Below are positions 445-64,000 of a stretch of DNA of 64,000 bases, piece by piece. Location: positions 5,890,001 through 5,954,000 of the forward strand of contig CM106586.1 in NCBI GenBank assembly GCA_048013815.1, in the 5' to 3' direction. The notes under the pieces were generated by a model. The model had not been told where the DNA came from. It saw only the letters and a list, made by a program, of their open reading frames with translations, and made no database searches. Numbering within the stretch: the first letter of the stretch is position 1; each line of letters begins with the position of its first letter. The position numbers and the translations under genes are program-made. Source of the DNA: Setoptus koraiensis (lineage: Eukaryota; Animalia; Arthropoda).

Positions 445-3400
445 TCATCGGGCAGTTGTTTCTGTCACGCCGAAGAAGGCCTTCTTGGCCTCTGAAATCT
501 TTGATCTGAGCTGGAATATATCATTTGTTTGGGCATCATTCAATTGCGACGAGGACGACACCGATAACGAGTCACTCAATCCGGTGTTGTTGTCCAGAGA
601 ATCCGATGCATTATTGTTGTTGCCTGTTGAATGATCGTCGGTGTTGCTGTCGATCGCTTTCAGCACCACCAAGTCATATGAGGAATCGTCGGACGTGGAC
701 GAGCCACTCTGCTGGCCAGCTTCTGTTGGGGCGCCAGTGTTGTTGTCCTGCCAATTATCGGACAATTGCGAGCCGCTGTCGCAACTGTCGGCCATTCTCA
801 AGCTGATGTTGTCCTCTTGATGGTAATGAGGTGAATCATCGATTTGTTGCTGTTGCAGTTGCAAATATTGTTGATTGTCGTTGTTGTCCGCGATTGGCGC
901 CTCTATTGGGGCCTTCATGAATTCAACATCGACCAGACTAGCTGTTGATTTGGCCAAATTATGATCTAATCCGTTGGACATGATCATATTTGTCTGACGG
1001 CTCACATTTAAACCTGGCGTTGCGACACTAGTCGACACTTGAATCATTGTGGGAGTGCTCGCGTATCTAGTGAGATTGGCCTGATACTGTTGTTGCTGTT
1101 GTTGTTGTTGTTGCTGTTGTTGTTGGCCAGTTGTGACGCTTATCGAGTCTTTGCTGGTCGACAAACCATTCATGGTGAACTCATTGGCTACGGCGAACGC
1201 GATCGGACCCCTCTTCGGTTGGTTGTCCATTAATTCAAGTTTCGGGGGATCCATGTGAATTTGTTGCTGTTGCTGGTGATACTTGTCGTAGATCGCTTGC
1301 TTATCCCTGTTGTCTGAAGCAAGCTGAGCTGTTGTTGTTGTTGCTGGCTGACCAACGGTGTCCAGCGAACGGTAATCAGGCGGATTGGCGGCGGCAACAT
1401 AGGCTCTCAAATCTGGGCCAATCTCTATTTTCAGATCAATAGTGGTGCCCGGTTGCTGTTGTTGTTGTTGCTGCTGTTGTTGTGGTTGAGGTTGTAGTAG
1501 TTGCGTTTGATACAAGGATGAATAGGGACAACAGGCGCTTAGTTGCGGCATGAGACAACAGCCTGTAGTGATAAACTGTTGCTGTTGCTGGAAAGGATAA
1601 AAACCATTGAGCGATGATACATATTGCGGACATTGTGAGCTATACACACTTTGTTGGTTGTTGTAACAACAAGCAGCAGGATAATGATAATTGTAGGAAG
1701 CATGCTGTTGTTGGCCGGTTGTTGTTGCTGTTGTTGGCATTAGACTAGCGTGTGGATTTGTTGTTTGGCCGGTGGTAGCTGGAACGCAAGGACATTGTTG
1801 TTGCGGCGAGGCGACAACAAAACTAATGTTGTTGTTGTTGTTGTTGTGCGTTAGTGGTTTGCACGACATTTGGCACTCTTGTTGTTGTTGTTGTTGTTGT
1901 TGTTGATCGCAATTACAATAAATATCTCGGCAAATAAATTTATCTGTCAGCGCCATAGACGACGAATCAATAGAATCGCTGGGCGCTTGTTTGTCGCTTG
2001 ATAACGAATCTCTGCCCGAGGAGCTCCTATGTTTGCTCGATTTACTGCTACGTCGTTTCTTATGGTGTCTCGGCTTGTCGCTTCGATCTCTGGCCGGCCT
2101 GTCTGTCGCCACCGCTATATCGGCTTGCCGTGGTTGCGTAATATCCGAGGCAGATTCTGTCGCTGTAGTTTCAATTGAGTGATTGTGTTCGTCATATTGG
2201 TCTTGAGCCTGTTTATAAATATGGCCGCTAGTGATGGTGTGGTCGTTGTTGTCGGCGGCCGTCGTGCCGCTTGTTTGGCTGGCCACAAACCGTTGTCTAG
2301 TTAGGGTCGGTACGCCATCGTTGTTGTTGTCCGACAACGATTTGTAAATGAGATCTTTGGCCGCATTGTCGGCCGTTGCAATTGCATTGCTATTGGCCTC
2401 AATTCGGGCGCTGGGCTCGCCTGAGCCGCTTGCTGGCAACACCAACAACGGAACGTAAGGCTCGTAAGGTTCACATGTTTTTTGTTTACCATTCGTCATG
2501 ATGGAGTCAGATGTTATTGTTGCGTCATCATCATTATTATCATCATTAATAGCGCCATTAATTATAACTGTTGCCTGTTGGGGATTATTTGCAAAACCGG
2601 AAATGGTTCGTCGCGTTCGACTGAATCGCTGCAACGAATCGTGCTCGGCTAAATCGCCCGCCCTCACCAATGGGTCGAGTGTGGCCAGTTCGTGGCGTCT
2701 CATTAAACGGAACGACTTTGATCTTGTGTGCGATCTAATTAGCTTCTGTTGTTGTTGAGACGCAACAGATTTTTGTTTGCGCAACGAGTGCCGAGAGGCC
2801 TGACGCAACACCTGAATACTGTCCAGGAATTCCTTGTCTTTCTCGCTGCTGCCCATGGGGCCCCTGTTCAATTGGCAGGCCTGGTCGAGTCGCTTGCGCA
2901 ATTGTCGTGACACGGTTGAGGCCGACGAAAGTGTTGAGCAGCAACTCTCACTAGACGTAGACAGAGACGCTCGTCTGTCGTCAAAATTGCGCCCTCTATA
3001 CGATCTGTTAATTGAGCCTGAATACTCTTGTTGGCCCTGGTTGATATGTCGCGTTCGTTGGGGCGCCTGTTCGCTGCCACTGTCGGCCGTTGTTACTGAC
3101 CGGTGGTCGCCCGTGTTGACTCGCTGATTGTGTTGGCTCAATTGTCCGCTAGGCGACTTGTTGTTGCTGTCATTTGCATTGTCTCTATCGCTGGCTTCTA
3201 TTGAGTCCGCTTGCGCGCCACTCAGTATCTCGATGAGAGAATCGCCCGAGTTGTCGCCAGAATTCTCTGTTGGCGTACGACGCTGTTGACACCTAGACAA
3301 CGCGCTTAGATCGCCATTTTTCAGCTGATATTCCGTTAGTTTGAGCTCTAATCTGGTCCTACTGTCATCCGACAACAAGTGTCTGTTGTCGGAGTTGACC

Positions 3401-32579: not shown

Positions 32580-33457
32580 TTTGGAGCAGTTTTGGGGCTG
32601 GTTTGTCGCGCAAATAACGATAATACCTCATTGGCTGGCTGGCTCACTCACTGATTGACTGGTGCAACAATAAACGCACTCGCAGCGATTACTGGTTGAT
32701 GTAATTAATTGATTTGCTTCAATTGAACAATCGATCAATTGCGTCGATGCGATCAGCAATTGTCGTCGAGGGCGCTACTCACTCACTTGTTGAGCACACA
32801 TCCTGCTTAAAGATTGACAATATCCTCTCACAATTAAAACCAATTGTCCATTTGAATTAGTTGTGGCAGCAATTGATTGTTGACCATAACAACAACTTGT
32901 TGGAATAAACTTGGCAAGACCACAAAATAGAGAGCGTCAGTTGATGCTGTTGTTGTTGTGCGAAGCGCATGCGCGCAGGTAACAACCAGGGAGGAGCTTG
33001 TATGAGCAATGGCAGCATGATGCAACAATAGCGACAGTTATATCATTACACACATTTGTGTGTGCATACTGGCAGGTGCAATCGTGAGTTGGATTGCAAG
33101 CAAAAAAAGAACAAAAATGAAAACATTCGATGGAACAGTGTGCCTTTGGCTGTGTATTTTTTAAACGATGCCAGCGCCTCTGGCGGATAATTTTCAAACC
33201 AGATGCACAAGCATTGGAAATTGCGCACACAGTACTAATAGAAGGAGCAGAAGAGAACATATGATTTGGAAAATAGAAGAATAATCAAAATATTGAAAGA
33301 AAAAGCAATGGAAATGAGAATTTATCATTAAAATAATACTACCAAACATGAACAAGATCATCAATATATTTATGCTAACTAATCAATTGTTTAAAAATTG
33401 TCATTTTTATAGTATATAATATAATTTAATATTAATTTAATTCAAATTTCACATAAG
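32580..33457. promoter_or_regulatory. Divergent (head-to-head) intergenic region between STOX and ING3; probable shared promoter/5'UTRs
   Basis: 878 nt between the two ATGs on opposite strands; strongly AT-rich from about 33240 to 33457. Transcription start sites not determined. Confidence 0.5.
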
Positions 33458-34483
33458 ATGATATTTCTAGATGATTATTTTGAGTCCATTGAATATGTAC
33501 CCATTGAGCTCAGACAAGGTTTTACATCCATACGGGAACTGGATTTGCAGGTTCACAATGCCATGGACTCGTTGGGAAAAAATTTTAAGGAATTCTTCGA
33601 TAAGGTACATACACTGACACCACAACAGAAACAAGACCAATACAGTAATTTGTTAGTTAAATGTGATGAAGTTATGACTGCCGCTAGCGACAAGGTACGT
33701 GTCGCAGATAGTCTACATGAACTAATTGAAAAATGTCGACGCCATTTAGACATTGGCCTGGAAAAGTTGCGCGAGGACCTCAAGGACGGCGATAAGGCCG
33801 ACATTATTGAAGAATTGGAGAGGCGATCTAAAGAGGAAGATGATCTTTATCAACAACAACAAGAACAAATGATTGCACAACAGAAACAACTGCAGAAACA
33901 ATTGCAACAGAAACAACAACAGCAATTAGCATTATCGCAAACCTCATCCAGAGCGCAAAATAACACTACAACAACGAAAAATACTACTAGCTATAAAAAT
34001 CTGCTGAAATCGTCACAATCGCTCAGGAAAGCCGATGCCAGACGACAATCGTGCCACCATATTATTACATCGTCAGGTGACAAACATACACTTGTTCGTC
34101 CGTCAATCAATAACAAACAAACCCCATCTAATCAATCTCAACTATTCAATTTAGAAACGGAAGTTACAAATGTTAATAAGCTAGCCATTGGTGACCAGCA
34201 GTTGTTGCGCAACTCGCAAAATACTTCTGTCACAAACTTGGAACAACAACAACAACAGCCATTAGGTCGCCAATCATCTCTGGCGTGCAATCGCGCAACA
34301 GCAGCAAATAATAATAATATAGACAGCGGCCCAGTAACAACGGAACAACAAAACAGCATACAACAGCAGATAACACCACAGTGTACGACCCCAATTGTGG
34401 TTGTTGGAAACAAAACAGGCGTCGATCCAGACCCCAGCAAAGTCTTCAGAGAACAGGTGGAGCCCGCGGTCACACAAGATTGG
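33458..34483 (+). CDS. ING3: Inhibitor of growth protein 3-like, exon 1: ING N-terminal helical domain, poly-Q, then a Rhes-derived segment
   Basis: MIFLDDYFESIEYVPIELRQGFTSIRELDLQVHNAMDSL...DKVRVADSLHELIEKCRRHLDIGLEKLREDL...IIEELERRS matches the ING3 N-terminus (MLYLEDYLEMIEQLPMDLRDRFTEMREMDLQVQNAMDQL...). Donor TGG|GTGAGT at 34484. Confidence 0.92.
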
Positions 34484-34762
34484 GTGAGTAGCTCGAACGC
34501 AAACACTCGTTCATTCTTTTGTTTGTCAATCTGCTCCAATTTCGCTCAAGTATATGAAAATCTAATCAAAATACTTTCCGTCTCACATACAAACAGGGTG
34601 TCTCTTTGGTTGATTGCCCAACCAAGGAAGACACAAACATCAATTTGGTCTTTCAGGAGTTGCAGGCTAGGGCACGCCAAAAATTAAGTGATATTGTCAT
34701 TAGCAACAATCAACAACGTAGACAATCTCTGCCAGGCCATGAGGTGCTATCCAATCAACATG
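34009..34762 (+). repeat. Left arm of a long inverted duplication (Rhes gene fragment copied into ING3)
   Basis: Reverse complement of 36541-37304. About 45 mismatches over about 626 aligned exonic nt (about 93%, hand count); includes a homologous intron. Confidence 0.97.
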
Positions 34763-35134
34763 CTTCCTCTAAAGCTTACATGATGAATAGTTCCATGATT
34801 CACGGGCAGACTAATCTGGTGCAAAATTCTCCATCATCGGCCGCCCACCTACATTGTCATGATCCTATTGTTGCTGCAGCATCTCAGGCAATAAATGCTA
34901 CTCAACAAATGCAACATGGACGCCGGACATCTAGCTTAAAGGCCAGTTACGCCGCCGTCAATTCAGGCGGCCTACAAAACATCTCAAGTGGATTGTTGGC
35001 ACCATCCCAACAGCAGTCACACCAACATCATCACAACCTCCAACAACAACAGAAAGATGGTAGCCCTAACACCAATAATCCCCTATCGACATTCAACTAT
35101 CATCCTTACAATCAAGAAACCTTAAATCATCAAG
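34597..35134 (+). CDS. ING3: ING3-like exon 2: Rhes-derived degenerate G5 segment, then the ING3 central motif
   Basis: Acceptor aaacAG|GGT at 34596 is phase 0 and in frame. Contains PIVAAASQAINATQQMQHGRRTSSLKASY, matching ING3 AAAQAVQATAQMKEGRRTSSLKASY. Donor G|GTAAAA at 35135. Confidence 0.82.
34761..34819 (+). repeat. 59-bp direct repeat, copy 1 (splice acceptor plus AYMMNSSMIHGQTNL)
   Basis: 53/59 identical to 35268-35326. Confidence 0.93.
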
Positions 35135-35267
35135 GTAAAACTGACCCCACAAAAGTTTCACCCAGTCTACTAGCTATTCATAATTTGGTCAAGTAGCTTA
35201 ATTTTTTTTTTCTTCATCTCTGAACTTTTTTACTGTATTCAATTTCAATACCATAAAATTCTTCGCC

Positions 35268-35326
35268 TGCTTCCGTTAAAGCTTACATGATGAATAGTTC
35301 TATGATTCATGGACAGACTAATTTGG
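35268..35326 (+). repeat. 59-bp direct repeat, copy 2 (functional acceptor of ING3 exon 3)
   Basis: 53/59 identical to 34761-34819. Confidence 0.93.
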
Positions 35327-35841
35327 AAAATAATAGAGTCCCACCGTTACACATATCACTCAAAGGACCCCGTGCCATTAAGAAGCTCAAACAGCAACAA
35401 GAAACGTCGCCCAATGGCGGAGTATACACTTTTGAAGATGTCGAAGGCGACTCGTCCTCTCATTCGCAATTATTTAGTTCCGCCCTTGGATCGCCCAGAA
35501 CACCTAAACAGACAACATTCGATGTGAGACAGCCAGTGTCAATGAATATGAATCATCATCTGATGGGAGACAATAATCAACGGATGATGATACACAACCA
35601 TCAAGGCAGCGGTGGAATAATAATGTACGACGGAGTTGGCGGCGGCAGTGGACTAATTCCATCTAATGAGGTATATTGTTATTGCAGAAAAATAGTGTTA
35701 GGTGCTGATATGATAGGTTGCGACAATCCAGATTGTTCAATTGAATGGTTTCATTATGAGTGTGTCGGGATAACAACGCCACCAGAGGGAAAATGGTATT
35801 GCGACGCCTGCAAAGCTGACCTGGCTTGTAGATCTCAATGA
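35282..35841 (+). CDS. ING3: ING3-like exon 3 with C-terminal PHD finger
   Basis: Acceptor ttaaAG|CT at 35281 is phase 1 and in frame. YCYCRKIVLGADMIGCDNPDCSIEWFHYECVGITTPPEGKWYCDAC is a C4HC3 ING-type PHD finger. Stop at 35841. The three exons total 2124 nt (707 aa). Confidence 0.9.
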
Positions 35842-36263
35842 GACGAGATGCAAAAACGACGAAGACTACTATCGATTGATTAATTGACTTGCGCGTTGCG
35901 CAAGATATGATTAGATTAAATACTATCAGTTCAGTTATTGAGTTAGCTTATACCACCATCATGACTAAATCTAACGCTGCTTCATATTGGTAGCCTCATT
36001 GAATTATGCCAAAACTGTATTACTATACTCTTGTTAGAGCTAATCAGCTCAGGTGAGACCAAGCGACAAACTGAGAAGAGCGAGCTGATTATACACGTCT
36101 ATCGAACCGTTAGTCATTTGATAAGCGTGTAGGTGTTATATGTACAATTTTAATTTTCTTTACAAACAAATCGACCGACCAATTACTAGTTATTGTAGTC
36201 AGTTGGTCACTCTTTTTTGACAACCATTACATTTGATATATACACTATCGTCTCGTCGTTTCT

Positions 36264-36269
36264 TTTATT
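36264..36269 (-). terminator. Candidate AATAAA polyadenylation signal of the Rhes-like gene
   Basis: TTTATT on the plus strand, about 165 nt downstream of the stop at 36434. Position only. Confidence 0.35.
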
Positions 36270-36433
36270 TGACGCAATTTGTTTTTACAGTAACAATATT
36301 GGTAACAATGTCGTCTTGTACTATTGTTGTCGCCCCGGGATTTGCTTTGTCATAACAGACAAAACATTGTGTACTGAAGAGCGATGCAAATTGATATTGG
36401 TGCCTCCATTCAATTAGGTAATTTGACTCCCAT

Positions 36434-36712
36434 TTAAGATATAACACAATTGTTTAGCTGATTAGCATTGGCGGCCGTCGTATCTTGCTTGTTGTTGTGT
36501 CTATTGCTGTTCAATAGGCTAATGTTTCTCAATCCTTTAACATGCTGATTGGATAGTACCTCATGACCAGGCAGAGATTGTCTACGTTGTTTATTATTGC
36601 TAATGACAATATCACTTAATTTTTGGGGCGCCCTAGCCTGCTTGAGCAACTCCTGAAAGACCAAATTGATGTTTGTGTCCTCTTTGGCTGAGCACTCAAC
36701 AAAAGAGACGCC
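36434..36712 (-). CDS. RASD2: Rhes/RASD-like small GTPase, last exon: G5 (ECSAK) and CAAX box (CVIS)
   Basis: Acceptor aaacAG|GGC at 36713. [26 protein letters not shown]...NNCVIS*. Confidence 0.9.
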
Positions 36713-37304
36713 CTGTTTGCAGGTGAGTGGCAAGGTTTTAGTGTGTCAAGTAGGTAGTAGTTTAGTTAGATTTAGTTATTGGCTCGAGATAAATTGGAAC
36801 AAGTTGACAAAAAATGATCGATTGTTTGCATTTGAGCAACTCACCCAATCTTGTGTGACCACGGGCTCCACCTGTTCTCTGAAGACCTTGATGAGGTCCG
36901 GATCGACGTCTATTTTGTTTCCAACAACCACAATTGGCGTTGTTATCTGCTGTTGTATGCTGTTTTGTTGTTCCGTTGTTACTGGGCCGCTGTCTATATT
37001 ATTATTATTTGCTGCTGTTGTGCGATTGCACGCCAGAGATGATTGACGACCCAATGGCTGTTGTTGTTGTTCCAAATTTGTGACAGAAGTATTTTGCGAG
37101 TTGCGCAACAACTGCTGGTCACCAATGGCTAGCTTATTAACATTTGTAACTTCCGTTTCTAAATTGAATAGCTGAGATTGATTAGATGGGATGTGCTTGT
37201 TATTGATTGACGGATGAATAAGTGTTTGGTTGTCACCTGATGATGCAATTATATGGTGGCACGATTGTCGTCTGGCATCGGCGCTCCTAAGCGACGGCGA
37301 TGAT
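36541..37304 (-). repeat. Right arm (donor copy) of the long inverted duplication
   Basis: Matches 34009-34762 in inverted orientation. Confidence 0.97.
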
Positions 37305-37680
37305 GATGTCCGACGCGATTGATTTGACCTTGTTGTTTGTGAAATATTGTCGCTGTCGGCGGTTGATCGATTACTTCCGGTTGCCAGTTGTTGTTGTTGT
37401 TGTTGTTGTTGTTGCTGTTGTTGCTGCTGCTGCAGATACTGTTGCTGTTCCTTTTTTTCCTCTAATATTAATTCTCTTAATTGTTTCACTTCTTGCCAAG
37501 ATCGTGCATCTTGAACAGAGTATACTAATATAAAGGCGTCGCCCTTTTTAATAGACAATTTACGCATGGCAGGAAATTCAAAAGTGCCCGAAGTGTCCAA
37601 TATCTCGAGATATATCTCGCCCATACCGGGTATAATGTATTTGTTACTGTGCAGTTCCTCCACGGTGGGTTTGTGCGTGT
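36845..37680 (-). CDS. RASD2: Rhes/Dexras (RASD/Di-Ras family) small GTPase, internal exon: G2-G4 with an insertion of about 170 aa; 5' exon(s) not located
   Basis: Branch-like CTAAC and acceptor gcaacAG|AC at 37681. PTVEELH (G2), LEILDTSG (G3), [19 protein letters not shown] (RASD/DIRAS hallmark), [10 protein letters not shown] (G4). Donor TGG|GTGAGT at 36844. The exact paralogue name is tentative. Confidence 0.88.
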
Positions 37681-39235
37681 CTGTTGCACGTGGCCAGCAC
37701 GTTAGCATCATGATGATCATTAGCATGCGAGTTGTTGTTGTTGTTGTTGTTGCATCGTGTGGTTGTTGCGTATTGTTGTGCACAGGTGATTTATTTGGCA
37801 TTTATCACGTCATCGAGGGGCGCGCGAGTTTATTCGGATGCAGCATCGCACAATACACGATTATACGCGCGTTTCGTGTATATAAAATAGAGTTTGGTCG
37901 CATTATATGGTTGTGGTTGATGCAAGTTGTTGTTGTTGTTGTTGGACGTAACAACATGGTGAGTGCGGGCGCGAGTGTGGGGATATATAGATTAAGACGT
38001 AGGCTGGTTAGTATTAATGGTTTTTGGGGGCTACATTTTTGTCGGTCGCTTGCTTGTTGGTCGCTCGCTCGTTGGTCGCTTGCGAGAATCGGCATTGCGC
38101 GCCGGGCAAACGACAAATTTTGCAGTATTGTTTGTAAGTGACATTTGAATTTGCATGCAATTCGAGCATTCTCTCGAAGCGGACGCAGCACCCCCATGTT
38201 AATCATGACAATAACCGATTAGCGAGCGCAACAAAATTAGTTAGCGGCACTCGAAGTGCCGCTCTAACGGTTACACTCCAACCGTTACAGTGTGACCGTT
38301 AGAGTATTCGTACACGGACTCGCCCGTGTATCGTGGGCTCACCTGTGCAGCGTGGGCTCACCTGGCCACACGGTGACCGACAATGCACGGTGGTCATGGT
38401 GAAAAAGAAAAGTGTACACTGTGTGCACTATGACCATCATCAATATTATCATCATCACCCGCACACTGTGGCGCGCTAATAATAATGATGATGTAATAAT
38501 GATTGTGTTGCGTTGTTGTGTCGCGTGCAAAACGACACACACACACACACGCCAAACAAGGTGAGCAGTTGTTATTTGGGCTTGTTGTTGTTGGCAGCTA
38601 GGCGCATGCACCGGGCCAGTTGTTGTTGTTGCTGCGCTCAAGAACAAAACACAGACAATGATGATGTAACAGCTTGCCAATGGCCGGCAATTGGTCGTGT
38701 GTTCAACATACGCGCCCAATGGAATACGAGAAATGGAAAACTAGCAACAAAGCGACAAACACACACACACACACAAAAGTGACAAGAGAAACAAGAAACA
38801 AGTGGCAAGAAAAAACAATGGCGACAGGTGAACCTGGCCACAGTGGCGCCCAAACTGGCGAGCCGTTTTGAGCTGGCTGCATTTGGCCATGAGTGAGATA
38901 AAATTTGGTTGTTGCTGTGACTGGTTCGGGTGCCGAGAAACTCAATTATCTATTTGAGCTGATTCGGTTGGTTTGGATAGCGCATTGATCGTGATTAATG
39001 GTGATTAGATCGTGATCAGACGGCAATTGTATTTCTATTGTGATTATATTGTGGTCAGACATTGATCGATTGTTAGAATTGGCTGTCGCTGTTTGCTTGA
39101 GTTATTATTGATAAGATGATGGCTTGGCTGAGCCGGCGACAGATAGCGGCTAACGAGCGCAAAAAGAATTGCAAACAACGCAAACACATCCTCGTCTCAT
39201 GTGACGCATCAATAAGTTTCTATTAGATCAGCTCG

Positions 39236-39361
39236 TATTTGACAGTTGCTATTTGACAGTTGCTATTTGACAGGTGCTATTTGACAGGTGCTATTGGACA
39301 GTCACCATTGGTTAGTCACCATTGGACAGTTACTACTGGACAGTTACTATTTGACAGTCAC
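39236..39361. repeat. Tandem repeat, 14-bp unit TATTTGACAGTTGC x9 (degenerate)
   Basis: Nine contiguous, stepwise-diverging copies. Confidence 0.9.
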
Positions 39362-40728
39362 AGTTTATGCCGGGTGTTTGTGTACTGAGTACAATAAATG
39401 TACCACACAACATATGTTGGCAGACACATTAGTGTCCGCCAATGATTATCAGGTGAGCGTCGAAAAGTGACCACGTGTCACCGACATCAAATGTGCAGTA
39501 ATGTCAAAAACAAACACTAATCACTGGTCGACATCGTAAACAATTGTCAGCTGACTTACGACTCGCGGCTCAGCTGACACAAGTTTGTCAGTTTCGAATG
39601 GACAGACCACACATAAAAATGAAGCATCACAGAATCATCACAGCCTATGATTGACACCACAACCTTTGTTAATTGTAAAATCCAATTGACACCGCGCATC
39701 GATTTCTCGTATCAATCGCGCCAGCACGCGCACCGATGACGCAACTGATGCGGTCCGACAGTGACAATTGGAACAGGTAACGACGCCATGTGACCATGTG
39801 ACCATGTGACCATGTGATCATGTGGCCATGTGACCATTTGACGTTACCGTCTAACCAGTTATCTGTGCTGTGCAAGCAATTGTGCTGCGCACATTCGACA
39901 CACCGATGTGTCTTGCCAACAACAAACCGCTTGTTAGCCTAACAATGTTAGAGGTCAAGTAGAGCATTTATAAATACAAGCAAAACATAACGTGCACATG
40001 AGATGCACGCGTATGTGCTGAAAGAGCCGACAGGTAAACGGCACAATTTCTCATGTGATAGATGCAGGCTGGCGCTGGGTGTCGCGTCAAACGATGCGAT
40101 ACACATTGTGCGATTAGACGCCATGACATTAGCAGATTATATCCCGCAGTTTGTTGCGTCTGGTTGGGGGGCCAGCGACGACATTTGTTTTGTTTGATTA
40201 TTACATCTTGTGTGCTCGTATTATTGCCACCATTGGCACTATCTGTCTAGACTGCTCTCTAGACATAGATAGGCCGGCGAGTGACCTTGCCAGTTTGTCG
40301 GCCAGTTTGTCGGCCAGTTTGTCGGCCAGCTTGTCGGCCAGCTTGTCGGCCGGCTTGTTGGCGCAAGTGCTCGCCATTGAGCAACGAGCGGCCATTGTAA
40401 TTGAAGCGAAGGCGAGCTCAGGATTAGCGCACTGGCATTTGTAGTCCGGTCGTGTATTTTGCGGGCTGTGCGCGCTGGCTGTGCCGAACGGGGCCCCACA
40501 CGGCGCCCCAAACGGCACACAAATGGTCAATGGCACGTGTAAACTAAGGCTGAACAAGCATCACACATCGACAGGCACTGTTGGCGCTGGTGACACTGTG
40601 GCCGCAGCACGCGCACACTGCCCAGCGGTCACTGTTCAACAGCCACTGCCGGACACACAGCTCAGGTAAATCACCTGTGCGTGCATTGTTGTGACTTGTG
40701 CTTTTTGTATGGTTGCGCTGTTGTCGTG

Positions 40729-63704: not shown

Positions 63705-64000
63705 CCTGCATCATTTAGTCTACATCATACACAGTCTAGACGGCAATACACATGCGACAGTGCCGACAGTGCCGACAGCACCGGAAGTGACCGTCAATTG
63801 TCAATTGTGAATTTGGCGGTCATTTGTGCGAGCAAAATATTAGCTATACTGCATTGGCATGTCAGTGTTTACTTTTGGGCCACTGTTAAGCCACCATACC
63901 ATACATTACGTACACTACCTATGTTATGTTACGTAACATCAGCAACATATCGGCGTGACATTGGGCCCGTTATGTTATTGCTATAGCCTAATAGTCGCTA

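Follow-up and report, generated by a model that had tools for sequence, protein, structure and literature searches.

How far can the interior of a chromatin reader be exchanged for foreign coding sequence while the domains at both ends are kept? The question is raised by a gene in a stretch of 64,000 nt from the genome of the eriophyoid mite Setoptus koraiensis (GCA_048013815.1, contig CM106586.1, positions 5,890,001-5,954,000 of the forward strand). This stretch is hereafter called the window, and all coordinates below are window positions unless another contig is named. The gene is of the ING3 type and is here called ING3b, a name used also for the divergent paralog lineage to which it belongs. 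ING3 (human ING3, Drosophila Ing3, yeast Yng2) is an H3K4me3-reading subunit of the NuA4/TIP60 complex. An earlier note on this DNA had described the gene as a young, frame-selected chimera formed by local capture of a piece of a neighbouring Rhes-like GTPase gene, intron included. The analysis reported here establishes that the chimera is real, fixed and transcribed, and of a known evolutionary kind, and indicates that the foreign segment took the place of a native linker.

The assembly, which has an N50 of 24.53 Mb and a two-chromosome layout and for which no RNA was used in annotation (PMC11920263), was searched over its full 48.76 Mb, held in two contigs. Outgroup sequence was provided by a 4.9-kb Logan contig from the closest relative (L003), found by protein search, and a protein alignment was assembled from the window protein, the spliced protein of the closest relative (813 aa) and 15 further relatives (530-630 aa). 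In addition, four public runs (X2, X3, X4 and X7) were compared over positions 33200-37900; X2 and X3 belong to different studies, X4 duplicates X3, and X7, for which the library type is not on record, is RNA-like by its coverage pattern. The spliced open reading frame of ING3b (33458-34483, 34597-35134 and 35282-35841) contains 707 codons with zero internal stops, the length that the earlier note had given, and its parts are the following:

33458-34483, plus strand: ING3b exon 1, with its ATG at 33458; starts with the native ING domain (N-terminal) and poly-Q and continues into the captured GTPase piece, of which it contains the first part.
33951-34006, plus strand: beginning of the native linker, now diverged, as far as the 5' breakpoint (~34002-34009); weak residual similarity (~60%) to L003 ~1163-1215.
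34009-34762, plus strand: inverted copy of the GTPase gene (37304-36541), comprising the end of its exon 2, its intron and the start of its exon 3; in sense and in frame, ~214 residues.
34139-34378, plus strand: central arm tract, 97.9% identical between the copies; probable recent gene conversion.
34484-34596, plus strand: borrowed intron, 113 nt, GT..AG, spliced in an X7 contig.
34761-34819, plus strand: second templated piece (D1), a direct copy of the 3' end of the gene's own intron 2 and the start of exon 3.
34810-35134, plus strand: native central part, up to the intron-2 donor; collinear with L003 from its position 2197, with GRRTSSLKASY at 34918-34950.
35135-35281, plus strand: intron 2, 147 nt, GT..AG, phase 1, placed by frame logic and by zero X7 depth in the bin 35084-35240.
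35282-35841, plus strand: exon 3, with the C-terminal PHD finger (~35662-35820) and the stop; the 59-nt copy has its source at 35268-35326.

The two ends of the protein are readily recognised. The Pfam ING profile (PF12998) matches exon-1 residues 3-104 with 67.6 bits against a cut-off of 23.9, and the best match among solved structures is the N-terminal domain of human ING3 (8cok, E 1.4e-17), followed by ING5 (1e-9) and ING4 (1e-7). In exon 3, the PHD structures of ING4 and ING3 match at E 3e-21 and 3e-19, with ING5 within 3e-21 to 4e-19; the Pfam PHD and PHD-1st_NSD profiles score slightly below their cut-offs, and alignment shows that the Cys4-His-Cys3 zinc ligands and the Tyr and Trp of the aromatic cage are all kept. 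GRRTSSLKASY, which we take to be an ING3-specific central motif, is kept in all ING3b relatives and reads GRRTPSLKASY in the canonical paralog. A Pfam scan of the ING3b pieces returned no Ras domain, and the captured piece represents only the G4-G5 half of a G domain, with NKTG as G4 and CPTK as G5. The mRNA is predicted to encode an ING domain, ~230 foreign residues, the ING3 central motif and a PHD finger in 707 aa, the foreign residues consisting of the GTPase low-complexity loop, the dead G4-G5 half-domain and translated former intron sequence. The window species also has in common with its closest relative a stretch of ~130 aa, with intron 2, that lies between GRRTSSLKASY and the PHD finger (34975-35660; L003 ~2350-3100) and is missing from the 15 other ING3b relatives, which are intronless there.

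The origin of the foreign residues was outlined by a repeat search, in which five collinear inverted blocks of 85-98% identity link 34009-34762 to 36541-37304; local alignment merges them into 34019-34762 versus 37294-36541, and the duplicated stretch is present in only two copies in the entire assembly. Exonic identity between the copies is 93% (41 differences in 612-631 nt), with indels of +3, +12 and -6. The embedded intron, of 113 nt in ING3b and 132 nt in the GTPase gene, has kept its GTGAGT...AACAG ends in both copies and is more diverged (80.6% identity over aligned bases, 29 gap columns). Furthermore, NKTG and DCPTK now stand in the copy where the donor reads NKID and ECSAK, and copying did not extend to the CAAX end (CVIS). 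On all these points, namely a copy set between the ING domain and GRRTSSLKASY, made at the DNA level together with its intron, and carrying decayed GTPase motifs without the CAAX box, the earlier note was correct, as it was in naming the GTPase gene as the donor: in the closest relative the stretch is found in the GTPase gene, at the orthologous position, and is missing from ING3, so that copying ran from the GTPase gene into ING3. The ING3b copy is 76-85% identical to the GTPase gene of the relative and closer to that of the window. Polarised by the former, the +3 and +12 differences go back to deletions from the window GTPase gene, which leaves the -6 as the sole indel of the ING3-copy branch. 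At 34376-34387 (GTPase ~36940) the ING3 copy keeps four ancestral codons, also present in the GTPase of the relative and deleted from that of the window, as a fossil of the donor.

The comparison with the closest relative also identified what the copy displaced. The protein of this relative (P0001) is 97% identical to the window gene over the N-terminal part, and L003 aligns collinearly with the window as far as 33950 (90% identity over 33427-33950) and again from 34810, with the same convergent GTPase gene downstream. Between these collinear parts, L003 presents 1034 nt of ordinary coding linker, free of the GTPase piece, versus 859 nt in the window. The linker of the ING3b family contains several conserved blocks (HR-RNNST; KKRERKRL-NS-M-IFNRNSR; Q-FL-SSP-TP; AKQPI-LTAIDAAHAVSP-ATNSDKL-LFSSN-NGD), which are common to the 15 other ING3b proteins and retained by the closest relative. 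None of them is present in the window protein, and a search of the whole assembly did not find the native linker elsewhere. These comparisons indicate that ~1 kb of native linker (~330 codons) was deleted and replaced, and that the event was not a simple insertion. The local exon capture envisaged in the earlier note hence stands as a DNA-mediated, in-frame chimera, but not as an insertion, and the note had missed a second templated piece of 59 nt.

This second piece, D1, abuts the inverted copy and is a direct repeat in which 34761-34819 is 90% identical to 35268-35326. L003 has the downstream D1 copy only, and four of the six differences are derived in the copy at 34761-34819, where what used to be polypyrimidine tract and acceptor has become coding sequence and the piece is translated as ASSKAYMMNSSMIHGQTNL. 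At the 3' junction, a microhomology of 9-10 nt, ACTAATCT(G/T)G, is common to the ancestral linker site in L003 and to the exon-3 source, and at the middle junction, between the two templated pieces, 2 nt (TG) are shared. Copy-specific change amounts to 4/59 nt (6.8%) in D1 and 23/391 nt (5.9%) in the arm flanks, and this similarity indicates that the inverted piece and D1 are of the same age. Considered as template switching, a 754-nt inverted and a 59-nt direct template replace ~1 kb at the target; no third template for 33945-34012 was found in the window.

The explanation that we favour, and consider probable as a whole, is a template-switch replacement in a spare ING3b gene. A single locally templated repair or replication event, of the kind termed fork stalling and template switching or microhomology-mediated break-induced replication (FoSTeS/MMBIR), would have hit the central linker of ING3b and deleted it together with every clade-conserved motif. 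The gap would have been filled by a 754-bp inverted copy of the convergent GTPase gene, with its source 2.5 kb downstream, and by ~50-59 bp copied directly from the intron-2/exon-3 boundary of ING3b itself, 0.5 kb downstream. As the neighbouring gene is transcribed convergently, the inverted piece reads in sense, and its frame fits that of ING3b at both ends. The captured piece would now serve as a flexible spacer joining the two ends, not as a GTPase module, and the two arms may still exchange sequence by gene conversion. We infer the single template-switching event from the scars that it would have left, and the spacer role and the continuing exchange from the patterns of change described below.

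Contigs from other studies cross the two outer junctions of the insert and thereby show them without recourse to the assembly, in agreement with the genuine duplication claimed in the earlier note: X2 and X3 contigs span 33200/33393-34060, together with 34634-36675 in X2 or 34634-35836 in X3, all with 0 differences. The contigs of the public runs end within the repeat arms, as the repeats predict. An inversion of the spacer between the arms was considered as well; these contigs gave no strand-changing joint, although, ending where they do, they do not tell the two orientations apart. X7 covers the ING3b exons; its depth is zero across the intergenic spacer, the intron-2 bin and most of the GTPase gene. 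One X7 contig of 602 nt (record 29) matches 34342-34482 and 34596-35056 with 0 mismatches and skips 113 nt with GT..AG; its joint corresponds to 34483|34597 (read as 34482|34596, with the cut at +1), the exon junction that had been predicted from the DNA. The contig crosses 34762 and extends 294 nt past the end of the copy into ING3-only sequence, and in 34376-34467 the ING3 and GTPase copies differ at eight positions and by a 12-nt indel. Given these ING3-copy-specific positions and the 294 nt beyond the copy, the contig must derive from the chimeric gene. The 5' junction is represented in RNA by separate contigs only, and a protein search with the exon-2 piece for transcript-derived proteins bearing the splice junction returned no match.

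Substitution patterns separate the native ends from the captured piece. Between the window gene and its closest relative, the N-terminal part shows a replacement rate (dN) of 0.017, a synonymous rate (dS) of 0.60 and a ratio (omega) of 0.03; omega is 0.08 in the central native part and 0.12 in exon 3, with a dN of 0.054. Neutral drift since the event would be expected to have produced ~30 replacements in the ING part, and six are observed on both lineages together, which indicates that the end domains have been under purifying selection after the event. Selection on the PHD end in turn requires translation through the foreign segment. Over 204 codons of the captured piece, the ING3-copy branch carries 16 replacement and 11 silent substitutions (omega 0.4-0.6) and the GTPase branch 5 and 8 (omega ~0.2). 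The comparison of the copy-branch omega with neutrality gives P = 0.02-0.13, according to the assumed transition bias; the copy-branch replacements cluster on the former G4/G5 residues, and ~30% of neutral histories of 27 substitutions would be stop-free. The most likely reading is that the captured piece is a spacer, with the ING and PHD parts under strong purifying selection. The frame selection that had been read from three in-frame indels hence holds in part: their sizes are as described, but two of them arose in the GTPase gene, and the dN/dS comparison of the two copies, at 0.4-0.6, does not place the captured piece clearly below 1.

The age of the event was also reassessed. The central tract (34139-34378) differs between the arms at 4-5 positions in 240 nt, versus ~10% in the flanks (permutation P < 0.001), and between the GTPases of the two species no part is less well conserved than this tract (81.9% identity, 48 gap columns), so that gene conversion is a likelier cause of its similarity than constraint. 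Three-way site patterns assign 4 changes to ING3, 1 to the GTPase and 38 to the relative in the central tract, and 23 to the ING3 copy, 12 to the GTPase and 29 to the relative plus stem in the flanks. The tract was probably homogenised by gene conversion between the inverted arms. The low overall divergence of the arms stems from this tract, and their flanks are about as diverged as the GTPase orthologues of the two species; the description of the chimera as young is hence doubtful. Each arm has gained ~0.08 synonymous changes per site since it was formed, and the synonymous distance to the closest relative is ~0.5-0.6; judged from the flank patterns, the event would have followed the split from this relative and would date back approximately one third to three fifths as far as that split.

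The recipient was also found to differ from what its name might suggest. A canonical ING3 is encoded on the other contig (C1:8917877-8919997), with a canonical-type N-terminus, GRRTPSLKASY and a PHD finger (loci L006 and L011). It matches the N-terminal structure of human ING3 with 96 bits versus 67 bits for the window gene, and the two paralogs are 41% identical. At least 16 further sampled genomes contain members of the ING3b lineage. As judged from these alignments, the window gene is a divergent second ING3 paralog and not a one-to-one ortholog of animal ING3; the identification as ING3 is right as regards the ING domain, central motif and PHD finger, with the qualification that the canonical gene lies elsewhere. 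The canonical gene has at least two introns, one splitting the ...AATQQ | MQQGRRTPSLKASY motif and another lying inside the PHD finger.

Three other explanations bear on these data. An assembly or haplotype artefact, in which the inverted copy would be a mis-join of reads from the GTPase gene, might be suspected, as the assembly draws on noisy continuous long reads (CLR) from over 100,000 pooled wild mites (PMC11920263). A mis-join is very hard to reconcile with copies that differ by 7% in exons and 19% in the intron, with ancestral states in the ING3 copy that the GTPase gene has since lost, and with mismatch-free contigs from other studies across both junctions together with a spliced RNA-like contig specific to the ING3 copy, and we regard it as highly improbable. 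A gain of function is easier to entertain. Here the captured GTPase loop would be a new regulatory or binding module, kept matched in the two proteins by gene conversion, a notion that draws on two RRQS sites identical in the copy, its source and the GTPase of the relative, on the 98% identity of the central tract and on omega point estimates below 1. One of the sites, RRQSLP, presumably represents a 14-3-3/PKA-type consensus, and in its most specific form this explanation would have the loop couple a chromatin reader to a Ras-type signalling input through a shared RRQS/RRQSLP module in arms matched by gene conversion. The RRQS matches are, however, short and putative sites only, and the tract conserved between the arms is of low complexity and poorly conserved between the GTPases of the two species, as gene conversion rather than constraint would leave it. 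We hence hold a gain of function to be quite unlikely, and the signalling link to be improbable in like measure.

The remaining alternative is an expressed but dying paralog. According to this alternative, the functions of the linker have been lost, canonical ING3 covers the essential role and the frame is open merely for lack of time. In its favour, the rate at which the captured piece evolves is about double that of its source, its omega is not clearly below 1, and ~30% of neutral histories with 27 substitutions would be free of stops in any case. A gene on its way out would, nonetheless, not be expected to show total dN values as far under the neutral expectation as those of the ING domain (0.017) and the PHD exon (0.054), nor to retain every zinc ligand of the PHD finger along with the Tyr and Trp of its cage; moreover, the sole indel on the copy branch is in frame, the intron is still spliced, and gene conversion makes the event older than it appears, which strengthens the argument from constraint. 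A dying paralog thus seems unlikely to us. Several observations nevertheless weigh against the replacement explanation as we have put it. A gene on the way out would account equally well for the loss of every clade-conserved linker motif beside a canonical ING3 at another locus, and under the observed transition bias the omega of the captured piece is indistinguishable from 1 (P = 0.13). The 5' junction (~34002-34009) is too diverged for microhomology to be read, which leaves the single event to inference, and its dating is noisy, ranging from one third to three fifths with the measure used. Support from RNA consists of one X7 contig at depth 4, from a single run of unrecorded library type, and neither the intron-2 joint nor a full-length transcript was seen among the X7 contigs; at the protein level, the 707-aa product is a prediction from the spliced frame.

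The donor was traced on the minus strand of the window as follows:

36434-36712, minus strand: last coding exon of the GTPase gene, with G5 ECSAK and CAAX CVIS; 36541-36712 is donor sequence; supported by the open reading frame and by Pfam Ras positions 133-160.
36713-36844, minus strand: GTPase intron of 132 nt, the original of the borrowed intron, from the alignment of the copies.
36845-37680, minus strand: GTPase exon 2, with G2 PTVEE, G3 DTSG, a low-complexity insert of ~170 aa and G4 NKID; 36845-37304 is donor sequence.

Exon 2 matches the Pfam Ras profile with 49.6 bits (profile positions 26-127) and is preceded by the acceptor caacag|AC at 37681/37680. The closest solved proteins are Rap2A, Di-Ras2, Di-Ras1 and Rit1, and a Protein Atlas look-up returned 'Ras family' only; the donor is hence described here as a Ras-family gene, and the label Rhes-like was dropped. 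No first exon with a P-loop was detected on the minus strand of the window up to position 64000. A Pfam Ras scan of the whole assembly identified a fitting exon ~34 kb upstream, with GSSAVGKTS, profile positions 1-28 and a donor phase that fits 37681/37680. This probable first exon (C2:5961534-5962565, minus strand; L015 735-1766) lies ~7.5 kb past the end of the window, supplies both the P-loop and an N-terminal extension of low complexity, ~300 aa in length, and closes with the donor CCAA|GTGAGT. Its link to the gene, drawn from phase and profile fit, is probable and would imply an intron of ~34 kb in a very compact genome.

Between 38 and 64 kb, the window contains few long open reading frames. 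In the minus-strand reading, the putative large intron presents short tandem arrays at 38530-38790, 39250-39340, 39790-39860 and 40270-40350, made of TG/CA runs, a ~12-nt unit 'tgtcaaatagca', and 'cacatggt' and 'ggccgacaa(a/g)ct' repeats. The 754-nt arms and their 1.8-kb spacer (34009-37304) could form a long hairpin if ING3b transcription read into the convergent GTPase gene; X7 does not cover the arm spacer and hence lends no present support to such read-through. On a more distant ING3b-bearing metagenome contig (L016, 8612-9709, minus strand), the convergent neighbour is a 365-aa protein with no Pfam match, unrelated to the GTPase. An old synteny of ING3b and the GTPase gene was considered and is ruled out by this neighbour, which indicates that their adjacency is not ancient and is specific to the window species and its closest relative.

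The systems to which this locus can be compared each share some of its features. A literature search for ING3 as a chimeric gene found no paper, and one for such chimeric genes in eriophyoids found nothing beyond passing mention. ING3b resembles ING3 in its N-terminal ING domain, PHD finger and shared GRRTSSLKASY, and differs from it in deriving ~230 linker residues from a Ras-family gene and in its distance from the canonical paralog (41% identity, 67 versus 96 bits). The donor shares with Di-Ras, RasD (Dexras1, Rhes) and Rap proteins G2 PTVEE, G3 DTSG..FPAMR, G4 NKID, G5 ECSAK, CVIS and a far-upstream GSSAVGKTS, and departs from them in the ~170-aa loop between helix 3 and G4 and in the ~300-aa N-terminal extension. 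FoSTeS/MMBIR, in which replication switches templates, produces duplication-inversion (DUP-INV) structures in human genomic disorders and tumours. The event at ING3b would be similar in its several short templates within a few kb, in both orientations, its deletion at the target and its microhomologies of 2-10 nt, and differs in having yielded a fixed germ-line, expressed coding chimera, with a 5' junction that is unreadable and a mechanism deduced from scars only.

The locus hence offers a well-resolved natural example, clean but not unprecedented, of an internal protein segment that appears to have been swapped in one step for foreign coding DNA. The donor and the recipient, a relative that lacks the event, the scars at the junctions, the splicing of the borrowed intron and later gene conversion can all be read together. 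That selection should still act on both end domains of an ING3-type reader after about one third of its length, with every conserved linker motif, has been exchanged bears on the importance of the linker. The nearest counterparts are the chimeric genes of Drosophila, reportedly catalogued by Rogers and Hartl, with Quetzalcoatl and Sdic given as examples arisen by partial duplication at the DNA level. In most of the Drosophila cases, tandem duplication has fused a 5' portion of one gene with a 3' portion of a second. Like them, ING3b carries the partial copy of a nearby gene fused in frame, with introns kept, and is transcribed; unlike them, it has had an internal segment replaced by an inverted copy and has kept both of its native ends.

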